Positions 1,400-62,600 of a stretch of DNA of 64,000 nt are shown here, piece by piece. Made by a program: the position numbers and the translations under genes. The stretch is from Oopsacas minuta. Its lineage: Eukaryota; Animalia; Porifera. Every line of letters starts with the position of its first letter. Position 1 is the first letter of the stretch. The DNA is taken from assembly GCA_024704765.1 (NCBI GenBank), contig JAKMXF010000295.1:1-64000 (forward strand). Reading direction: 5' to 3'. The notes beneath the pieces were generated by a model. The model searched no databases. It was given only the letters and a program-made list of their open reading frames with translations, and had not been told where the DNA came from.

Positions 1400-2241
1400 C
1401 TCTGTACATCGATGTTTGAGAAAGTCTCTATGTACTACGCCATTTTAACGGCCAAGAATACTTCGATTGACCTTGAAAATGAAGGAAAACAGGATCGAAT
1501 TTCCGCAGAAACACAAAGATTGCACTGTGGAAGATTGGAACAGAGTTCTGTGGTCGGATGAATCTCCATTCGAACTTTATCCAACCCCAAACAGACAGAA
1601 TTACCGAGTTTGGAGCAAAGATTCAGGTTCAATCGAACCCTACACAATGAAAAAATTCCTGGCGAAAGGTTATGTTTGGGGTATGATGTCTCAACAAGCC
1701 CTATCTGAGTGCATGCTATACCTCAGGGGCAAAGTAAAAATGGAGAGTACTATCGTACGAAGATTTTGGCTGGATCTTGAAAAGATGCGATCAATAGAAG
1801 AGCAAAAATGGATCGGTTTTACAGCGGGCCATGACTTCCAAGATGTCCGAGATAATTTTTATGCCAGACGGGGCTCCCGCTCATACGGCTAACTAACCTA
1901 AGAATGGTGGAAACATAATCTTCCAGCGTTTTTGCAGAGAGCGGAGTGGCCTGGGAACTCACCTAACCTCAATCCATCGAAAACTTATGGTCAATACTGA
2001 AAGACAAAGTGGAAGAGTTTGAGCAAGCAAGCACCGTGAATGTCCTTGTCAAAACTTGGAAAAGGCATGGAGTGGTATTTCAGGAAATGCTTTGCAAAAT
2101 ATGGTCTACGGTATGCCCAGGCGAGTAGCACTCGTATTAGAAAGACAAGGAGACTATATTGGGAAGTACTAATGTACAAATTGTTGTATTTTAGCTTACA
2201 TTGGAATCATTATAAAAACGATAATCCTTTGTTACACCCTG
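1400..2241 (+). mobile_element. Tc1 (DD34E) transposon, 5'-truncated, decayed transposase
   Basis: ORF 1467-1892 has WNRVLWSDESPFEL. Shifted frames give DGAPAHT and WPGNSPNLNP motifs. The 3' end reads ..ttacaccctg|TA, a Tc1-type terminus. No matching left TIR found. Confidence 0.8.
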
Positions 2242-2254
2242 TAGATGAGAATAG

Positions 2255-3240
2255 GAAGTCGCAAGTATACTGAATCAACATTATAACTATTCAAATAAGA
2301 GTAAACAACAGAATTAACTTGATAAATGATAAATTCAAGGGGTAAGATAAATATACTGAATTAACATCTTATCTGTTAGAATCACAATGGATGAGAAGAA
2401 AAAGTGGAAAATGTGCTGAATCAACGTATTAAATCATTAAATCAAAGTGAAAAAGTGAAGAGAGTTGAAGATACACTGAAACAACATGTTATTTGTTAGA
2501 ATCGCGGTGAATTAGAATAGAAAGTGAAAATTCCCTGAATTAAGATGTTGAATGGTTAAATAAATGTGGATGAGCAAATAGAGTTGAGGGTAAACTGATT
2601 AATTTCTTGCAGAGTGATGCTCAAGGTATACGAGTAAGAAAGTAGAAAATACACAGAATCAACTAGTTACATGTAAAATCATGATGAATACTTAAATTGA
2701 GTTCAAGATACATTGAATCAACTTGTTACCCATTGGAATCATGATAAATCACAATAGAAAGTTGAAATACAATGAAACAATATGTTAAATGTACAATTAA
2801 CAGTAAATAACTGAATCAACTTATTAAGTGATATATTCAATATCTAAGAGAAAGAGATCGAAAATATACTGAATCAACATGGTTAGTGATATTTTCGATA
2901 AGGGAAAATATAATAGAAAAATGCTGAATCAACTTGTTACATGTTTAAATCAAGGTGAATACAACAATTGAGTTAAAGATCCTCTAAATTAGCATGTTAA
3001 CTGTTAGAATCTGGGTGAATGAGTATGAAAATGTATATTTACTGAATCCAAATCATAAATGTGTAAATAACAGTGAATATGGAAAGGAGGATAAAGAATA
3101 ACTGAATCAACATTATAAGAGTTATATCAACGCGTATGAGAAAAGAAAATAGAAAAAATCATTCAACTCATTACGATATACGTATATCACAATGAATACA
3201 ACAATGGAGTTGAAGATACTCTGAATTAATTTGTTAATAT
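2255..3240. repeat. Degenerate ~59-bp tandem repeat
   Basis: Core 'actgaatcaac' and variants recur mostly at ~59-60 bp spacing (approx. 2270, 2357, 2417, 2476, 2535, 2654, 2712, 2811, 2869, 2923, 3041, 3101). Confidence 0.6.
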
Positions 3241-9531: not shown

Positions 9532-10521
9532 GTGTTATCTTTTCGAATAAAGGCCTTCAAACCTGTGTATACAACTTGGTAGTTATTGTAATATACATTT
9601 TCAGTAGAACACAAAAATTAATCCATGAGGGCTAAATCAAATGGCATACATCCTTCTACCAATTGTAGGGAACCAATTCAATTAAACTGGTCGCTGGTCA
9701 AGTTGAAATACCTAAACCTTAGCTTATTCTTCAGGAAGAAGATCTTGATGGTGTATTCTAGTTAACCCCTAGTAACCATATCGATACTTCGCCTACCATA
9801 ATCTGAATTGTATTTATGAAACGTAAAATGATATATTTCTAGAACTGTCTCCACAGTGGTTAGAAGCAATGAATAGACAAAATATTGATTCCGTATTTGA
9901 TGGTTTTATTTCATTATATATTGTTTAAATGATTCTCATTAAAAATATCTAAGCGATTGAGACCTTAGAAGCTGTGAAATTTCTTAATCAAAGATGCGAA
10001 AAATTTACAGGAAAATTGTGGCTTCATGATTTCTAAATTTAGCCACAATTTCAAATCAACCTGTAAGAGCAATTACATAATGGAATGTTACTAATCTCGT
10101 ATACATTATACATTTCGACTATGCTAATTCTAAATATCTTGTTTCCATGACTGTATTTTGTATATATTTCGTGCACATAATATTTCTAAAATCTAGTAAA
10201 ATCCGTACAGAATTTTTACAAAGAGCAATACTTAAAGTGTCAGGAAAAATAATAACACAAAACAACAGCGCAAAATGAATCGGATACACGCATTACGATT
10301 CCTAAAACATAATCTAAAACCACAAGACCCGAAACAGTGCGCAACCTATAATTTTCAATTACATTCCATTACAACATTTCGTTGCTAGGAAATTCCCATT
10401 GTAGCATACTGTAACAATGGAATGAGATAGTATTGAATTTCGTTCTTGAAATTTATTATAGTAACTTCTATATATAATCTACTGAATAACACAACATATA
10501 TAACAGAATTTCTTGAAAACA

Positions 10522-52428: not shown

Positions 52429-55400
52429 TAAATATATTTCACCTTAATTTCTATACACCAATTACTCCAACTCACTCACATGTAAATTGATGTAATTTTG
52501 CTTTACACACTGATTACTAAATGAATCTAATACAGTGGAACCCCGCTCAACCCCCACCCCGGAATAGCGGCCACTTTTGGAAGTCCCATTTGAATACCCA
52601 GGCAATAACATAAATGTATTTCAGAATTACTGCCATTGTTTTAATACAAAACTTTACTATATACTCTGGAATACAGGATACATCTAACTTTTTCTTATGG
52701 TAACTTTATTTTGTAGTGAAATATACTATAGCAATGTATTCAATTTCTTTCAATAGATTCTCTGCTTACTCCTGATATTTTGACTGCAACTGGTACAGAC
52801 ATACCTAAGTACTCAATATGTTTCTAAAGATTAAACAATTGGCTAATGTGTTGTCATTTGATATTCCAATCATATGACCTAACAGTACCCTATGATATAC
52901 ATGAGATCAATTAGGATGCAATATTATTCGCAATCTAACATACATAAGTACTCACTGGGTTTGCAAAGATTGAATGATTGAGTAATGTATCAACATAATA
53001 CATTCCAATAGTGAGCTAACCGCATCTAAGGATTAATCACAGACCACAGGTAATTTTGAATGGACGAGATTTCGTAGTAGTTCCTGTTTGCGTAATGATG
53101 TCGAATGCCACTTGAGTTAACAAATCACTATTGAGGGTTGGGCAAAAGTATATACATACCATTGTTATTTTGAAAAATATCAAAAACTATAATCAAAATG
53201 GCGGAACCTGATAAGCAACAAATAGAAGTTAATATCACTGACGATGATTTAATTGACTAGAGGGCTGATGATGAAGGTATACCCGACCCTACCCGCAAGC
53301 TGTCTTGACGGTGAGAGTGAGACTCAAGATCTTATGAAGCAGTCCAGGAATAAACACTGAAAGAGGAAAGGGAAAGGAGGCGACCCTAATATAGCTCTTA
53401 GTTTTAAAAAGGCATAACCAGTGGAAACACATATTCACAAGAAGGGGTACCTTCAAAGTAAAACACTTTTATAATATTATAATTAACTATGTATATATAC
53501 CATGTACTTAATCCATTATTCAAAATATTAAATATCCTTCTAGTAAATTTATTGGATTCTCTTAAAATGTAATAAAACACCTAATTAGATAGAATTGTAA
53601 GTTACTAAATTACGGAATATTTCGAAAATATTTTGGAACTATTAGATAATAGAAGATCCAAACATAATATCTGCTATGTGTGTGGAATGTGATATATCAA
53701 TAACAAACTAGATTTAAGCGATATCTCAAAAACTCTCTGAAGTATCAAATGTTTTGACCTATCAGATATGAGAGTTTACAAATATGGAAATTAGGTTATT
53801 ATTTGATTTATATTTAACTAAGATTATACCATTGTAAACAATTAACTATTTGTTCCTATTTTGCAAAATTATTCAAATGCCAATATATAAAACCTGTATC
53901 TAAGTTTGTGGAATTAATTACTGTACGTAAGAATTATATTACAGCTTATAGTTACTAGTTCAAATAGTGATATAATCAAGCGGTGAAAGTTATGTTGATA
54001 AATTATTGATCATATCCATCAACGATTATCTAACTGTATAATGTGGAATTCATGATAAATTTGTGGCCAATGTAATACAATCCCGAAAATGTAATTGTTT
54101 GATATGCATATAATCAATAGTAAATAATAAGGAATACAGTGTGCACCCGAAAGTGTCACTCGTGACAAAGTATTCACGGGCCGTGCGACGCAAGTATGCG
54201 TAGCTTGCTTGTATCACTAATTTCTGCTTGTCTGTGATATCCTGGAAGGATTCAGTTAGTGTGAACTACTCTCTTACTTCCATTATTATGGATAATTTTC
54301 AAATTACACGAATACGGCGAGCAAATTTGTGACGTCAATAAGGTGCTGGAATCTGGGTTTGAGTGGGGGAATTGGTTAAAACGAAGTGGTAAATTAAAGT
54401 ATTCCCTTTTGTTACGAACCTACACTTCGGTTGTAATCGGTTAAATAACACTCCTAATATCTTCTTTTTTCAGTTCGTATACATGTAGATTGTTTAGCAA
54501 AGTAAACACTTTTTCTCTTTCTATTTCGGTTCACTTACATGTAAACTGTTTTGCGAAGTAGTAAATTCATATTTCATTTGGTTTTTAGAATAATCTGTAC
54601 TTTTTCAGTCGAAAAGAGTCTCAAATTTGTCACCATCACGAGGCCTGCTGCGTAGGATTTTGACCCGCAATACAAAATCCCAATAGCATATCCATGGTGC
54701 GGGTCAAAATCCCACGATGTAATATATGCGTAGGATTTTGACCCGCATCAAAATGTATTATTGTCGTAGGATTATGACTCTGAAGTAATCTTACTTCTCT
54801 GTCATTTGACTTTTTCGAATTCCATACACTTTAATTACTTAATTACCGCTAAATGTACGTATGTAATTCAACTTTAGACTAGCTATGCATATACGTAACA
54901 AAATGAACAAGTCAATTTAGAGTTGGATTCTAGAAATTAGTGAATTTGTTTGATAACATGTAAACTATGTTCCCACTACATATAACAAATTTACAATATG
55001 TTTAATTATCCAAAATGCCAAAAATAGACAGTGTATATAAATATTTTGTAATACTATTACTTGGACAGAAGGTGGTAGGTATTTGATAATTGTATTCAAT
55101 AACTCATAATAAATAATATAATTTTCATGTCAATCTATATATTGCAATATATTCTATCAAATAACAAAGATTTTGCAAGCATTAGCATGATAATGAATAT
55201 TCGGAATATCTTAAGTACGAATTGTAGGCGATTTCATCTTTGCCCATTTCTCTATACTTCCTAACAAGCTTTAAGGAATATACCACTGAAATATGTTCAT
55301 CTATTGCACAAGCATAGACTATGCATTTGTTACGGGAGTCTTGGTCTAAGTTGATACACATATAGAGTTGAAGTGAAACCGCGAGCCTCTGGCACGCTGC

Positions 55401-55956
55401 ATACTCCTGGATAACACTAGATTTCTATACACAAAACAAGTCAGCTGCGGTGGCCTCCTCCTTCCCCTTACAGCCACCCCCTAACGCTAAACGTTTAACG
55501 TTAACCTCACCTTGTTTATGTGTGCAGTGTAGGAGCGAGTTTGATGTGATTGCGATCACACCAAATTTAATTCTAAGCTGCAACATAAACGAATACATAC
55601 AATAAATCGTAATTTGACAGGCAAGTGAGGAGCTAACGGACCCCGAACGGCCACAGACAAGGAGACATTAAAAAATAAAAAATAGAGAAGAGCTCGCTTG
55701 TATCTGATTCCATGCTGTCTTTCATCTCGGGGTAGACTCGTCAGTTGCGCTGCCTTTCTCGCAATATACTTAGATGGTAGATAGATGATATTCGCCACTG
55801 GGGATGTGCTGTTGCAGGTCGCGTTTCTATTATCTGGGCTCACCATGATAGGGATTGCGTTGCCTGAATAACCCCGACAGAGGTCCCCACAAAGTTAGAT
55901 GTACCTTGCCTTTGAGCCCTTTCGAATGATGGAAAAGAATCATGAATCGCTAAGAA

Positions 55957-56830
55957 TTAGTCAGAATTGTGTAAGAGGTAGAATACAGTATTGAGTGATC
56001 CGATGAAAGTGTCACAGCCCCAAAGTTGGACAATTGGTTTACTCATTCCAGCATATTTGTAGAATTGCCCGTTTTGGTAAAGGATTGAATAGAAATGTCT
56101 ATTACTTAATATACTAAAGCCAGCAAGTTAGTAGTGAAGTGTGCGTTAGTTGTGACTGGTGGTAAAGAGTTTGTCAATATCACTTACAAAAATGTCTGGC
56201 AATTCGGGTAGATGTCCGATTTCTATTGTTAGCATGACAGGTATTGACTTGAATTGACCAGATATCCTCTCTAAGACAGCAGTAGTTGATCAACAAGACT
56301 TGCATTTAATAGGAACGAGACTTCGATTAACAGATAATTCCAGGTTTGTAATAACGCCTCCTATTTTACTAATCATGGATTGTGTCTCAAAGATATTGGT
56401 GCATTGGTGGCATTGGAAGATAGTGAAATATTTGTCGTTACACAAATCTTCTGTTCGTAAATATTTGATGATGTTACCCTCTGATCCAAAGAAATCATAA
56501 GACCGTATCAATCCTGAGGAATCATAAATAACTTCGAGCCCAATTTAGTAGCAACATATTCTCGAAGTTTCTCTAATTCAAAATTAGCAGCCAATTGGAA
56601 TATGTAGTGGAATTCAGCTTCAATGTGTGTACTTCCGATTCACTTCAGTGAGTCCATGATGGTTGCTTTATTCGAACTGAGAATAGCCAATATATTGTCG
56701 ATAGAACAGGTGTTAGATTGCACGATGTTGTTATACTCTCCTCCCCATTTAGGATATGGGGTAAGATCTGATGCATTTTGTATAGATTGTTCTGGTATTT
56801 CAATGATCTCATGAACTTGCTCAGTTGGGA
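55957..56830 (-). pseudogene. USP/C19 peptidase-like domain (decayed) at the end of the Ginger1 gene
   Basis: KWGG..SNTCSIDN (Cys box; Cys codon 56706-08), YDFFGSE, CHQC and CKSC Zn-ribbon pair, PVMLTIE, Y*LAGF..RHFYS..FYKYAG (His box; His codon 56095-97), terminal VFY. Contains several stops and two frameshifts. Confidence 0.65.
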
Positions 56831-59580
56831 ATTTAACTCAATTATTACTGGTAATAGAACAGCAATTGGATAGTCAAGATCTTTTCGTGTCTCTTCAGGT
56901 ATTTCAATAGGATAGGAGGAACGATATTCTGCGTACCAATTACCGGCTGATACAGCAAGTTTCTCCTTAATCTCAAAATTTAGTTCATTGGGTGGATGGT
57001 AAGATTATAGTAAATTGAATGAAGTTAGAGATGCAGCTTTTGTAGCGAGTTTCTCATGTAGCTGGGTTAAGTAGGTGTTATTGACAAGGGCTGATAGTAT
57101 TCGAGGTTTCAATTGAAGTAGCTCAGAGTCGATATTTTCATAGATTGAGTGTTGTTGCGGTGTTTCAACTGTTTCTTCCATGGTGTCCAGGTTCAATATA
57201 TCATCCAAAGAATCTAAATACAAATAAACATGTGAAATGTAGGATTACTATTACGTATTAATCGAATCAATACAGAACACAACTAGTTTATATGTACCTA
57301 ATCATGGGCTGAGTCAATTAGTATAGTTCAGTACAATATTGTCTCGTTAATATATTTACCGCTAGGAGGGAATTTGCAAGATCTTTTGGGCTTCTTTGAT
57401 TTGCCTGTTTTCGTCGAACCTGCTTTTTCGTTCATGCGAGAATGATACTTTCGTGATAGATGGATAGGTAATTTGGCTGTTTTGCTATCTGGGTCTTTGC
57501 GAGCAACTAGCTGGCTTAGTTTAACTTTCTCCACCGTATATGGTCCCAAATATTTCCTTAGATCTTTTGTCCCTGGGAGTCGCTTGGCTTTCTTTATATT
57601 ATGTACAAGTACTTCATCTCCTTCCACAAATTCTGATCTAAAGATAAAACAATGATTATACAAAGAATTATAATGTGCCAATTAGGTACAGTTTGTAATG
57701 ATGCTAATTTTATAACTCAAAGTAAGTGTTTTGGAATTTAAGAATTCATATAATTGAGGAAACAAGAAATTAGTTCCGATTCAAGACTACTTCATATTTA
57801 TCTGACTATACAACAATCAGTGAATTGAATTTTATTTAGTAAGAGACGATGTATGAAATTCCAACAAGTTACATCACAACAAGAATGTGTTTCGTTATTG
57901 CTTACCTGTTGTGTTTATCTTTGCTGTCATGTTTTCTTTTGAACTTTCTGACCAGCTTTGATGTTTTCAATGGCAGTTATCCTGTCAGCTTTACGTGTGG
58001 AAGAAAGATTTTCTATCCATTCGTTATCAATTATAGGAAAGTCAAATGGGCGTGTTTCGTTTGCATCCATTTGAATATTCTCATCTTCTAATACTTCTGC
58101 CTCTGAGATATCAGCTTCGGTTAGTTTATCCGGGGTTAGTTGGAGAAGTGATAAGATTGAGAAGGTTAGATGAATCAAAGTCTCCCAAACATGAGATAAA
58201 AAGGTGTGTAACTTGTAGAGATTTTGGCTTGAGTATTTGCTGCTAGTACTGCTGTCTGTAATTTCTCTGTCCATTGAGTGTCCCCATCAGATTGCATCTT
58301 GTTGATTTTTCTATTTGTAAAAAGTGCTAAATTGATTGAAAGCTATGTAATTATAAACGACGTGTATTAAACTTATGTTAGACATGTAATATTTATATAT
58401 TGATATTTAGCATCAATACTCACGTTTTCGATATTTTGTTGTGTGAGTCAACAAGTCCGTTACTTTGTGGGTGTATGCTGTGGTTCTTCTGGTGTTGACA
58501 TTTATCTTTACGTGAAATTCTTGAAATTGCTATTTTGAAAGTAAATAAGAGAACGATAACAATCTACTACGCGCATGTATTTAGTCTTGTACAACAATAG
58601 TTAGAAAGATAAAACGATTAATAAGGTAAATTTTCCTCCCGAAGGTAGTAGCATCAATTCGTAAATTCTTATTTATTAGTGTTTAACATAAATTAAAATC
58701 CAATTTTCCACACGGTTTCTTAAATATGGCCATCAGGACGCACAATTTCCAACAAGGATATATATTGAAGCAATGCGCTGACAATGGACAATGCAACATG
58801 TTACGTACGTATATCCAATATAGTAAGTCGCATTGTGCATCGGGAATTATTACTTGGTGTATTTACAATTACTAATCTCGAGTATGTAAAAAATATGAGT
58901 TACCTTGCTTGAGAATTCTGTTCCCTGATCATGTTGGAGGATGTTAGGTACGCCGAATGAGAGGTAAATTTCCTGCAAACAATCCAATATTTCTTTAGAA
59001 GTTTTAGTCTTGAGTGGTCGGGCAATTACAAATTTACTCAGGTAGCACACGATTACAAGAATGTGCTGAAATCCAAGTACAGTGCGAGACATATTGTATA
59101 TGAAATCAATTCCACAATGACACCATGGTTTTTCAGGAGGAGGAATAGGTTGAAGCTCTCGTTGTGGCTGAGGAGGTAGAGCAGCAGAGGTTTGACAGTC
59201 ATGGCAAGTTCGGATCTAGAACAGGAAATGATTTAATTGTCAGTTTGTAGTCCAGTCTAATGTAATTTACTACGTTCCAGATGTCCCGCTAAATTAGCAT
59301 TCCGTCCCGCTTTTTCTTCACTCAGGTTGGCAAATATGTTTATGTGAAATACTCCCACTACCTATCCCAATTACTAACTACCGCAAGGGTCATTAGTTGT
59401 TAGATACATGGTTGGTTGGTTGTACCGCACAAATAGATTTCCATATGATAAAATTGTATACCGGTATACTAAATATCATCAGATCGCACAATATTAATTT
59501 TACAATAGCACAAATAAAGCTGTATACAGTAGAATAATTACAAGGTGAATAACCTCAAACTATAAAATACATGCTGTTCT

Positions 59581-59662
59581 CAGACTTAACAACCCCTTTT
59601 GCAAATTTCCCTGGATTTTCAAAATTTGTAATCCAGGGATCCCTGGAGGGTTGGTAAGTCTG
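59581..59662. mobile_element. 82-bp MITE with 15-bp TIRs and a 6-bp TSD, in intron 2 of the Ginger1 gene
   Basis: CAGACTTA(A/C)CAACCC at both ends; TGTTCT directly repeated on both flanks. Confidence 0.7.
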
Positions 59663-62600
59663 TGTTCTCAGCCACATTTTCTTGGAAAATCATGTATGAA
59701 AGAAATACGTAATTTAGTAACTCACATAGGATCCAACATCATTGTATATGCCATTCCAATAATATTTATTTCGGATTCCATCAATGGTAGTATTGATTCC
59801 AGGATGAGTGACATTGTGATAGAATCCGATAATGTTGTCATTTTCTGAGACTAGTAGAATCTCCAAGTATTTCACACAGCCATTTTTCTTTCTGAAAATC
59901 TACAAGAAAATTATTTTAGTCAAACTCAGAGGTTGTAGCTAGCATTGAGGGGCAGAGGAGTCCCCTAGCGTTTTCGCCCTTCTCATCTCCCTATGGTACG
60001 CAAATTTAATGAGGCAACTACATATCTGCCTCCTCGCAGATAAGTAGTCACCTCAAGATTTCTAATTATGTCCCGGAAATAAGTATAAATCAAAATTATC
60101 ATTCAGGAATAACCTTCATTAGCTTATTCTCTTGAAAGTAAATCCCCTTGCACTTTCTGACAAAATTCTTCTTTCTGTAGCGATCACTCTTGATTTTTGG
60201 TGGGATAATATTCGTCTGGAGGTATCCACGAATTGCTTCATGCTCTGTCGCATCCATAATGAAAATGTTAAAAGTAAATATAAGTGTTGATGTTGAAATC
60301 TAGAAATAAAGTAAAATGTTAGTGTGTGCATTTCGGAAGTCACACATGTATAAATATGAATACTATGTGACTAGGGATGAAATGTTGATATTACTTGATT
60401 TGGAATTGCTACTTGCGGGTCAAAATCCTACCCAACAGGCCAATGTTGGTCGACCCATAATAAGGCTACATCTATTATCACTTAGCTGCACCTCGTTAGT
60501 TATTCACCTGTCAAATTTTAATTTTCATCAGGGTTTCATACCGATTGTTTATATTACATATTTTCTTATAATATTGCAACCCTTCTTTAGACTTCTTCCC
60601 TTTCAGCTTGTTATGCCATAGTCTATGTTTCGGCCTCACTATAATAACTGTATTTTATTAAACAATAATACTTACACAAAATGGATTCGTTTGTTGCTAG
60701 CATATTGTTTTGTTAAGGTTAATAAATATATCCATTTTTTGACCATCACTTCAGGATACGACAATCAGTTAATAACATCAGATTTACCATATTAGATATA
60801 TTTTGTCAATTTTTATTGGATTCAGTTTACAATTGTTCAATGTTCAATTTAACCAGATAATATTTGGCGAATAAGTCAATATATAGTTTCCAACCGACTA
60901 ATATTGTTATTTGCTCAAGGGTATTATTCATGAAAATAGAAATTCGTTTCCAGCGGTCTTAACCTTGGTTCCTTTTACCTTTTAAGAAACATGATAACAC
61001 ATAGTTTTACCACATTTGGAATTGCAATACTCGAACTCTATTAACACACCTGTAGCCACATAAATAGATTGATAAATCATTGAGGTATAGTCCAGATCTA
61101 TTATCACACTACGTGACCGTTTAGTGGCACCGAAGGACATGAATATAATTGAAATTGATTATATAGTCCTAAAATTTCCAATCTACTGTATTTCCCTGAA
61201 TAGGCACCGTGGATTAAATAATCGCCGAGGCCTAGAAATAGTAACTAAGATTTGTGAATATTTGTTTATTGCCACTCTTTTGAATAATGATTTCCATTTC
61301 AATTATCACTTGTGAATGTGTACCCCTAACTATATTTAACAATGTGGAAATTTGTAATGATCATAGTTGTTCTCATTTGCTTAGATTTCCTTTGAACATT
61401 TCAAAATTCTCGTGTGAGAAAATTCACAAATTGACATAATTGCCAAGTTAAATGAACAAGAGTTAATTACTGATTATCTATAGAGTCAAATTCCGAGATC
61501 CGGTTTCCTCCCAAAGCGGGGCACCATTTTTACAAAGAGTGTAAATCACAATTAAAAGTTGAAATGCGAATTTTGGATTCAGCATACTTTGTTAACCATG
61601 TAAATATATGTTAATAGCAAGTATATATGTGTAATTTGAGATTTCAATACTTAATAATACAGACTACATTATGTTAGTCTAGAATCTAGATGGTACACTT
61701 CTACAACGGACTATCTAGTTGAACGAAATAAGTAAATAAGACATGTAAATAATAATTAATCAATCTCTAAGAGGCGGGCATCTGACCTAGAATTGACAAA
61801 ATATAATCCCCAATGTGTTCGTTATTGGGAGAGCTAAATTATTCCACTTTGAAAAAGTATACCTAATTTTCACGGCGTCCCTAAATGTCAATTGTTTTAG
61901 AAAAATATGGCCCATGAAATCGGCATTAAAGCATGTATTTTGGTTAAGAGAATTGAATGTGAAAATACTCAAAATATTGATCTTTCGGAAAATCGAAAGA
62001 ATTTCATTTTACATGATAGTATATCGAATACTATTTTCATAAACCATGGACAAGAATCGGAATGTTTACATTTATAGTTTTTCACCGTTAACCTATCGTG
62101 CTTTAGTGAATTCATAAGTCAACAATCATATTAGTTATAAATTAACTTTAACCACCAATAGAACCAAAATTTCTGATTTTCCATCAGCCAATACTGTATT
62201 CAAAACATAAACTTTTTCCAAACATAATTGAGGCTTAGGATACCGTGGTTAGAATGAACGATTACAGTAGTCTATCGAAGCCCTATTTTAGCAGTTTAAT
62301 GGTTGAAATATACATACTTCCCAAATAGAAATCAAGAAGAATAAAAGAGATGCCTCCCGCAAACTCTTTGCGAGTCGCGCAGTGCAAGTAAGCGTAGCTT
62401 GCTTATATGTGTATTATTATAATCTCTGTGTAAATTCCTTAATAATTTATACAGATTAATACACCAAATTAAGTTGATATGTATAGCATTTTCCGCTTAA
62501 TTACTAAATTAATGTGCTATTACAAAGCACTCAGCTCAGACCCAGCACGGAGATTAGGTCCCCGCTGAGTATGTGCTGAACAAAGTTCAAAAGGTCCTTT

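Follow-up and report, generated by a model that had tools for sequence, protein, structure and literature searches.

Ginger1 elements, described from Hydra, Aplysia, Branchiostoma and an aphid, are cut-and-paste DNA transposons of 2.6–7 kb with terminal inverted repeats (TIRs) of 40–270 bp, TGTNR ends and GC-rich target site duplications (TSDs) of 4 bp (PMC2836005). Their gene contains introns and encodes a Gypsy-like integrase marked by YPYY, H2C2, DDE and GPY/F motifs, the last of which separates Ginger1 from Ginger2, and an OTU or Ulp1 domain, sometimes a PHD, is found at the C-terminus (PMC2836005). Here we describe an element on the minus strand of the first 64,000 nucleotides of contig JAKMXF010000295.1 (the whole of this stretch is referred to as the window) from the glass sponge Oopsacas minuta. 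It is very probably a dead copy of a Ginger1 family in which the transposase fuses the integrase to a diverged domain with the fold of the ubiquitin-specific proteases (USPs; clan CA, C19-like), predicted to be an active isopeptidase in intact members. A first-pass annotation, made from the letters of the window, had proposed a fusion of this kind, and its statement that Ginger1 transposases may end in OTU, Ulp1 or PHD modules agrees with PMC2836005. The element shares with described Ginger1 elements the TGTNR ends, a 4-bp TSD, a single intron-containing gene for an H2C2/DDE/GPY integrase and a C-terminal domain of the cysteine isopeptidase type. It differs from them in that this domain has the USP fold, where OTU, Ulp1 and PHD have been described, and in its host, no sponge being among the described ones. 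No paper linking Ginger1 to a USP fold was found in the literature, a search that did not cover Repbase and Dfam entries, and within that scope the earlier suggestion that the fusion is undescribed holds.

The decayed element extends from 54646 to 60437. Its inverted arms (54642–54683 and 60400–60441) are 42 nt long and 81% complementary, the flanking GGCC being counted in both, and this complementarity places the 5′ TIR at 60400–60437 and the 3′ TIR at 54646–54683 (both minus strand). The coding strand has TGTTGGG...GCAGCA as its termini, and the 5′ end starts TGTTGGGTAGGATTTTGACCCGC, a TGTNR terminus. The duplicated GGCC flanks both TIRs, at 60438–60441 on the 5′ side and at 54642–54645 on the 3′ side of the element as transcribed, so that both the TIRs and the duplication claimed in the first-pass annotation are borne out; at 42 nt the TIR is at the low end of the Ginger1 range. 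The window contains no other copy of the element. Eleven related loci (L001–L011) were fetched, three of them partial (L002, L006 and L009). The 5′ end TGTTGC is present in L001, L003–L005 and L007–L011, and inverted termini of the form TGTTG...CAACA are common to at least six independent elements. Matching 4-bp duplications are seen in five elements (GGCC in the window, GACC in L001, GGCC in L004, GAGC in L007 and GTTC in L010), and duplications with one mismatch in L005 (GCGC/GCAC) and L011.

These termini bear on a different origin for the integrase, namely a degraded long terminal repeat (LTR) retrotransposon around which the TIR and TSD pattern arose by coincidence. The integrase is indeed Gypsy-like, and the Pfam H2C2 and rve models fail to tell the two sources apart; against this stand the termini shared by at least six independent elements, the five exact duplications and the one in L005 that is a single base off. 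The content of the elements points the same way. In the window no open reading frame (ORF) for reverse transcriptase, RNase H or protease lies between the TIRs (all open stretches of at least 25 residues were listed and ten were scanned with Pfam, where only integrase families matched besides a zf-AN1 match to the broken pieces that was judged chance), and between the TIRs of the relatives there is the same exon set of an integrase–USP gene, with its introns and a 3′ non-coding region, and nothing else. We regard an LTR origin as extremely improbable.

Seven exons can be placed on the minus strand, all with GT..AG bounds and compatible phases, in agreement with the first-pass annotation. Exon 1 (60114–60257) holds the ATG and the N-terminal region upstream of the zinc finger; its spaced Y/P/Y-F/Y-F residues (GYL..IPP..RY..NF..IYF) may or may not correspond to YPYY. 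Exon 2 (59726–59899) encodes the H2C2 zinc finger (Pfam Integrase_H2C2, E = 1.2e-8; 35.4 bits on this exon, above the cutoff) and exon 3 (58904–59215) the DDE core with its first two Asp residues (rve, E = 2.9e-7; 31.1 bits on this exon, cutoff 32.6). The HPQSNG..E motif follows in exon 4 (58424–58529), located from open frames and comparison with relatives, which is frameshifted and in which the Glu reads Asp. Exon 5 (57906–58310), placed from open frames and read contigs, carries the end of the integrase core and an acidic linker and is broken by indels and stops. Exon 6 (57360–57637), placed from open frames and relatives, contains the GPY/F module (KYLGPYTV) and a basic tail, and ends in phase 1; LGPY is kept in L001, L003, L004, L005 and L007, and the D, D and E of the DDE motif are all unbroken in the relatives. 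Exon 7 (55957–57213), delimited by its frames, the family alignment and a structural model, begins with a helical N-terminal region, continues into the USP-fold domain (about 56760–55960) and ends with TAA at 55959–55957.

The last bases of exon 6 read ...AGC G (57360) and the first of exon 7 AT TCT (57213), so that the frame is kept across a GT..AG intron of 146 nt (intron 6, 57214–57359, minus strand), as the first-pass annotation had it. Four read runs of one sample were mapped on the element, and the joints cited are taken from those listed. In run X1, which we read as RNA, depth is ~ 6,000–29,000 on exon bins against ~ 300–1,600 on intron bins and at the 3′ end, and in X2 and X3 it is flat. 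A joint 57213/57360 that skips 146 nt, with CT..AC on the plus strand and hence GT..AG on the minus strand, is present in X1 alone; on this reading of X1 it supplies the reads across the junction that had earlier been named as a check. Other joints confined to X1 are 59215/59726 (510 nt skipped, CT..AC), which marks the boundary between exons 3 and 2, and 58526/58903, and loose ends of X1 contigs link 60114 to the start of exon 2. For intron 4 the listed joint 58346/58424 does not match the acceptor at 58311/58310 given by the open frames (among the joints listed), and could belong to a different copy or to an alternative site.

The same arrangement recurs in the relatives. At eight of the eleven loci (L001, L003, L004, L005, L007, L008, L010 and L011) the USP exon is preceded by a full or near-full set of integrase exons, with order and orientation unchanged, so that other copies keep exon 7, which the first-pass annotation had left to be seen. 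Both termini are within the locus for seven of these eight, only the 5′ terminus having been found for L003, and the USP exon is inside the TIRs in all the related elements. This includes L010, of a diverged lineage with a USP domain 36% identical, in which integrase and USP exon sit together within TIRs flanked by GTTC. L007 and L008 are separate insertions, each at its own site, that share an identical USP exon and have every exon open. The phase-1 GT-AG junction into the USP exon seen at window 57360/57213 is kept in L004, L005 and L007/L008, where the acceptor brings back the frame precisely where the conserved residues begin; in these loci the basic tail contains an additional small exon.

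If the last exon were a second transposon gene, or a host fragment that had been captured, it would stand outside the transposase polypeptide. ORF callers do list a stand-alone ORF of 376–441 residues, and in L001 the exon is ~ 1.2 kb away from exon 6. The stand-alone ORFs, however, have no conserved start codon at the 5′ end of the exon: the called starts are TTG, GTG or a non-homologous Met, and the open frame extends back to the acceptor. In L001 the gap is due to an insertion within the exon itself. Together with the joint observed at 57213/57360, the phase-1 donor and acceptor kept in four lineages, and two NCBI gene models of O. minuta (P0001 and P0042) that join integrase residues to the domain, this makes a separate gene very unlikely. 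The integrase and the USP-fold exon form a single spliced fusion gene.

The nature of the last-exon domain was approached through its relatives, and what we say of the intact protein is drawn from natural intact members of the family. A 69-residue piece (56293–56499) was searched against 1.8 billion representatives and gave 34 matches. These include two intact ORFs of 388 residues (P0005 and P0017), gene models from the O. minuta assembly GCA_024704765.1 and proteins named "hypothetical protein LOD99_... [Oopsacas minuta]". After two further searches the family comprised 28 clusters, none with a precomputed Pfam domain and all but one, a Logan cluster, originating from ENA assemblies or O. minuta. 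In the family alignment (A1) a nearly invariant Q/H-x-NTC-[SP]-x-DN is followed by YDFFGSE, two CxxC pairs, P-x-LL-T-[IV]-E-[IL]-GH, Y-x-LAGF, HFYS, [YF]-K-[YF]-D and N-x-VFY-L-LH. Exon 7 of the window has the Cys box, CxxC, CxxC, IPVMLTIEIGH, Y.LAGF, HFYS, YKYAG and VFYLLH in this order, which confirms the ordered set of USP motifs read in the first pass, interrupted by five stops and two frameshifts. Between lineages dN/dS (the ratio of nonsynonymous to synonymous divergence) of the USP exon is 0.15–0.24, and we conclude from this that it is under purifying selection.

AlphaFold2 was run on alignment A1 with P0005 as its first sequence, and gave a model with a predicted local distance difference test score (pLDDT) of 77.5 and a predicted template modelling score (pTM) of 0.61. 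When this model was compared with the PDB by Foldseek, the top 50 matches were all USPs (257 matches at E ≤ 1e-3, best E 3.3e-8), among them USP18, USP46, Ubp8, USP12, USP2, USP21, USPL1, USP14, USP1 and USP30, as the USP-like reading of the first-pass annotation had predicted. USP/UCH families were also returned from the AFDB (AlphaFold Database) Swiss-Prot set, the AFDB clusters and the ESM Atlas, the last both by shape and by language-model features; PAN2 is among the fold matches. VIA-align gave Z values of 11–12.6 with ~ 225 residues aligned, residues 133–388 of the model corresponding to the entire catalytic domain of each USP. The alignments start with model residue 134 on USP7 218 and USP2 271, and with residue 135 on USP46 40, USP14 110 and Ubp8 142. 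By these offsets the Cys of the NTC motif (C139) falls on the catalytic Cys of 11 USPs (USP7, USP46, USP12, USP30, USP1, USP14, USP2, USP21, USP28, Ubp8 and USPL1). PDB titles name the catalytic Cys as C114, C276, C146 and C450, the first three belonging to USP14, USP2 and Ubp8, respectively; C223 of USP7 and C44 of USP46 we take to be the catalytic residues under C139. In the model C139 lies just before a helix (140–150), a strand begins with H343 (NHFYS), and the strand after it is followed by D358 (KYD). The order of the His and Asp and their placement on strands, assigned by sequence order and secondary structure, are as in USPs. The model thus gives the last exon the thumb–palm–fingers fold of USPs with an ordered Cys-His-Asp set, and by the same model the family is a new, very diverged and unannotated branch of this fold.

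The points that weigh against our interpretation concern the domain, the splice and the target site. The identity to USPs is 10–17%, the TM-scores are 0.3–0.6 and the model is of medium confidence. Neither Pfam UCH nor UCH_1 matches any of ten family members at E ≤ 1, the intact P0005 and P0017 included, and a search of PDB sequences with the family profile returned no USP; membership of the USP family is accordingly supported by the model at the level of fold only. The superposition of the Cys residues was inferred from the start offsets of the alignments and not residue by residue. The joint 57213/57360 is a single contig of depth 298 with 36 nt on its shorter side, and that run X1 is RNA follows from its depth profile and four intron-sized joints. 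Finally, a target preference for CCGG/CCGT has been described for Ginger1 in Hydra, whereas the duplications here fit G-N-N-C in a small sample in which neither CCGG nor CCGT occurs; the Hydra preference may not be a strict criterion for Ginger1. Other weak matches were set aside: zinc-finger matches of intact relatives in Pfam were taken as noise, BRO1 and retroviral p10 in the PDB profile search (E > 0.1) were judged chance, and treble-clef and DUF723 look-alikes of the 69-residue zinc-ribbon piece in the ESM Atlas were below the trust level. Pfam gave no match for the last-exon pieces among ten broken pieces of the window, and blastn against phage records gave none for the element, as expected.

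The extreme divergence from active USPs and the missing Pfam match would also suit a domain without catalysis, a silent module that binds ubiquitin or a ubiquitin-like modifier (UBL) and anchors the transposase on modified chromatin or on repair factors. Pseudo-enzymes with USP domains exist, such as PAN2 and USP39; PAN2 is one of the fold matches, and the closest match in Swiss-Prot, DRIP1/C14orf28, is uncharacterised. Against this main alternative, the intact members keep the Cys, the His, the Asp/Asn (Asn in P0017) and the conserved Q/H four residues before the Cys. Losses from the triad are confined to visibly decayed copies (NTS in P0015, LFY in P0048 and KYAG in the window), as expected if the triad is selected, and for this reason we consider a silent module rather unlikely.

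The window copy itself is dead, as the first-pass annotation had judged from the two catalytic replacements. Its integrase reads NGLVDSHNK where relatives have NGLVEAHNK, and the residue after the His box is Ala (KYAG) where relatives have Asp (KYDG/KYDD). In addition to the stops and frameshifts in exon 7, exons 4 and 5 are frameshifted, and other contigs have an extra base after 58472 in exon 4. At the stops at 57005 and 56292 all contigs placed there read another letter, so that these two stops are private to the window copy.

A working scheme can be put forward for the intact family. Its single seven-exon gene encodes a transposase of ~ 890 residues. An integrase of the Gypsy type, composed of an H2C2 finger, a DDE core and a GPY/F module, makes up the N-terminal two thirds and is joined in frame by the phase-1 GT-AG splice to a helical linker and the USP-fold domain. 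The domain, of the cysteine isopeptidase type, has a putative Cys-His-Asp triad, its fingers have a zinc ribbon of four cysteines, and it would be an active enzyme removing ubiquitin or a UBL. The modifier may be ubiquitin, SUMO, NEDD8 or another; USPL1, a SUMO-specific enzyme of USP fold, is among the fold matches. Travelling in cis with the transposase, the domain might act on the transposase itself and stabilise it, on histones or chromatin at the target, or on repair factors. This would be the same job as has been proposed for the OTU and Ulp1 domains at the same position in other Ginger1 transposases. The USP fold would then be a third type of clan CA isopeptidase at the Ginger1 C-terminus, unrelated in sequence to the other two. 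Three independent recruitments argue strongly that the removal of ubiquitin or UBLs is tied functionally to integrase-type transposition and that the fusion did not arise by chance. With its apparently intact copies, the family would offer a compact natural system in which to probe the link between transposition and deubiquitination.

One clade of the family, that with GGATTTTGACCCGC termini, differs further from described Ginger1 elements in having a conserved 3′ block of ~ 200 nt that contains a hammerhead-like motif. The block is 84–100% identical between lineages in which synonymous sites are saturated; between L006 and L007 it is 97–100% identical while the proportion of synonymous differences (pS) in the USP exon is 0.81. 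It lies at 55717–55925 of the window (minus strand), at L007 9285–9508, L001 9190–9409, L004 9340–9569, L005 9335–9543, L006 9155–9364 and L003 10360–10569; the diverged L010 lineage has no such block. Its upstream part (~ 140 nt; 55780–55925, minus strand), directly 3′ of the stop codon, is recognised from its identity of 84–97% between lineages with saturated synonymous sites and is more conserved than the protein. RNAalifold returned a fold for it, sequence variation being too low to judge that fold. The motif GGCAACGCAA occurs in both the upstream 140 nt and the hammerhead part.

The last 55 nt of the block fit a type III hammerhead ribozyme, GUGUA/UUGCG-loop-CGCAA-CUGACGA-GUCC-loop-GGAC-GAA-ACAC. 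Across seven sequences 97.8% of the cells pair, whereas controls with slid partners reach no more than 56%. No core position varies among them, and compensatory changes are seen from C-G to U-A in stem II and from G-C to A-U in stem III. The Rfam model RF00008 (Hammerhead_3) matches L007 9448–9506 over its full length, scoring 25.6 bits where the gathering score is 48.5 (E 0.45). In the window the candidate (55717–55769, minus strand, predicted cleavage after 55765), identified from the alignment of relatives and Rfam, is degenerate: the copy is mismatched and Rfam returned no hammerhead match for it, and in L011 the core is mutated. A sub-threshold SNORA53 match of the window copy in Rfam, inside the subterminal repeats, was rejected as chance, and a discontinuous or type I hammerhead was rejected as the stems fit type III only. 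With type III hammerheads, and with the known ones of 3′ untranslated regions (UTRs) and retroelements, the candidate has in common the CUGANGA...GAAA core, three stems of which stem III is the open one, the GUA cleavage triplet and a coding-strand position in the 3′ UTR; its score below the gathering score sets it apart.

We know of no hammerhead in a DNA transposon. That one clade combines a transposase-borne USP-fold isopeptidase with an active type III hammerhead in the 3′ UTR, the transposon cutting its own mRNA, is a tentative proposal to which we give somewhat less than an even chance. If true, cleavage of its own mRNA would leave a 3′ end that is not polyadenylated and is capped by structure, or would limit the element's own expression. 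It would also be, as far as is known, the first self-cleaving ribozyme integral to a DNA transposon, linking ribozyme biology to these elements. Between the conserved block and the 3′ TIR of L001 there is an array of a 30-nt tandem repeat (9736–10194), open in both strands.

Repeat comparison shows that the TIR core GGATTTTGACCCGC occurs again, in either orientation, in the subterminal region at the 3′ end of the window element (54695–54750), and related elements have up to about 20 copies of the motif. In their 3′ subterminal regions 8–20 copies of the TIR core (GYGGGTCMAAATCC) form arrays with a spacing of 35–70 nt, as at L005 10256–11183 and L004 11783–12211; the arrays of these two elements are probably binding sites for the transposase. 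Contigs of X1 and X2 link 55263 to 59724, skipping 4,460 nt, and further large skips are seen at 55533/57044 and 55400/58050. These joints are internally deleted derivatives of the transposon family, which are probably non-autonomous. In the O. minuta contig of L003 a second, more distant integrase-like gene (1689–3024) lies ~ 4 kb upstream of the Ginger1 copy, 34–60% identical to the exon pieces and with H2C2, rve and GPY parts present.

In comparison with known enzymes the predicted fold of the family is like that of the USP/UBP deubiquitinases (MEROPS C19; PF00443 and PF13423), for example USP46, USP12, USP30, USP7, Ubp8 and USPL1. Shared are the Cys at the N-terminus of a helix (NTC..DN, compared with GNTCYMNS in USPs), the CxxC...CxxC zinc ribbon in the fingers, the His box (HFY) followed by an aromatic residue and Asp (KYD), and a C-terminal VFY strand. 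The family is unlike USPs in having no match at the level of hidden Markov models, in its compactness (~ 260 residues) and in its fusion to a transposase. The best fold match in AFDB Swiss-Prot is DRIP1/C14orf28 (Q4W4Y0; E 1.2e-9, TM 0.57 by hit, root mean square deviation 5.0 over 278 residues), which is also a top match in the ESM Atlas and is 14% identical to the family. It has been classed as an orphan protein with a papain-like domain of the deubiquitinase type (PMC10318531). Like the family studied here it has a USP-like domain of ~ 300 residues with no Pfam UCH match; unlike it, it is a single-copy host gene of vertebrates with no integrase part. DRIP1/C14orf28 may be distantly related to a transposon module of this kind, or may have been domesticated from one.

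Among the matches to AFDB clusters a similar USP-like fold is seen at the C-terminus of several long uncharacterised proteins, for example A0A814FZU2 (SWIM-type, Mutator-like), X1XT72, X1WZY9 and LOC116303514 (A0A6P8IPW8), which suggests that modules of this predicted fold are present on other types of transposase. Outside Ginger1, Ulp1 domains are found in Mutator elements and OTU domains in Helitrons. The recruitment of deubiquitinases by transposons is itself already known, since a Trichomonas vaginalis protein that combines transposase_11 with Peptidase C19 (XP_001314237.1) is mentioned in PMC2836005. Such fusions imply a tie between transposition and Ub/UBL pathways that has recurred. All three of these fusions belong to other transposase superfamilies than the one described here, and the C19 domain of Trichomonas is recognisable by sequence whereas the domain of the window family is not. 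What the Trichomonas, Mutator and Helitron fusions have in common with the predicted product of this sponge family is a DNA-transposon protein that carries an isopeptidase of clan CA.

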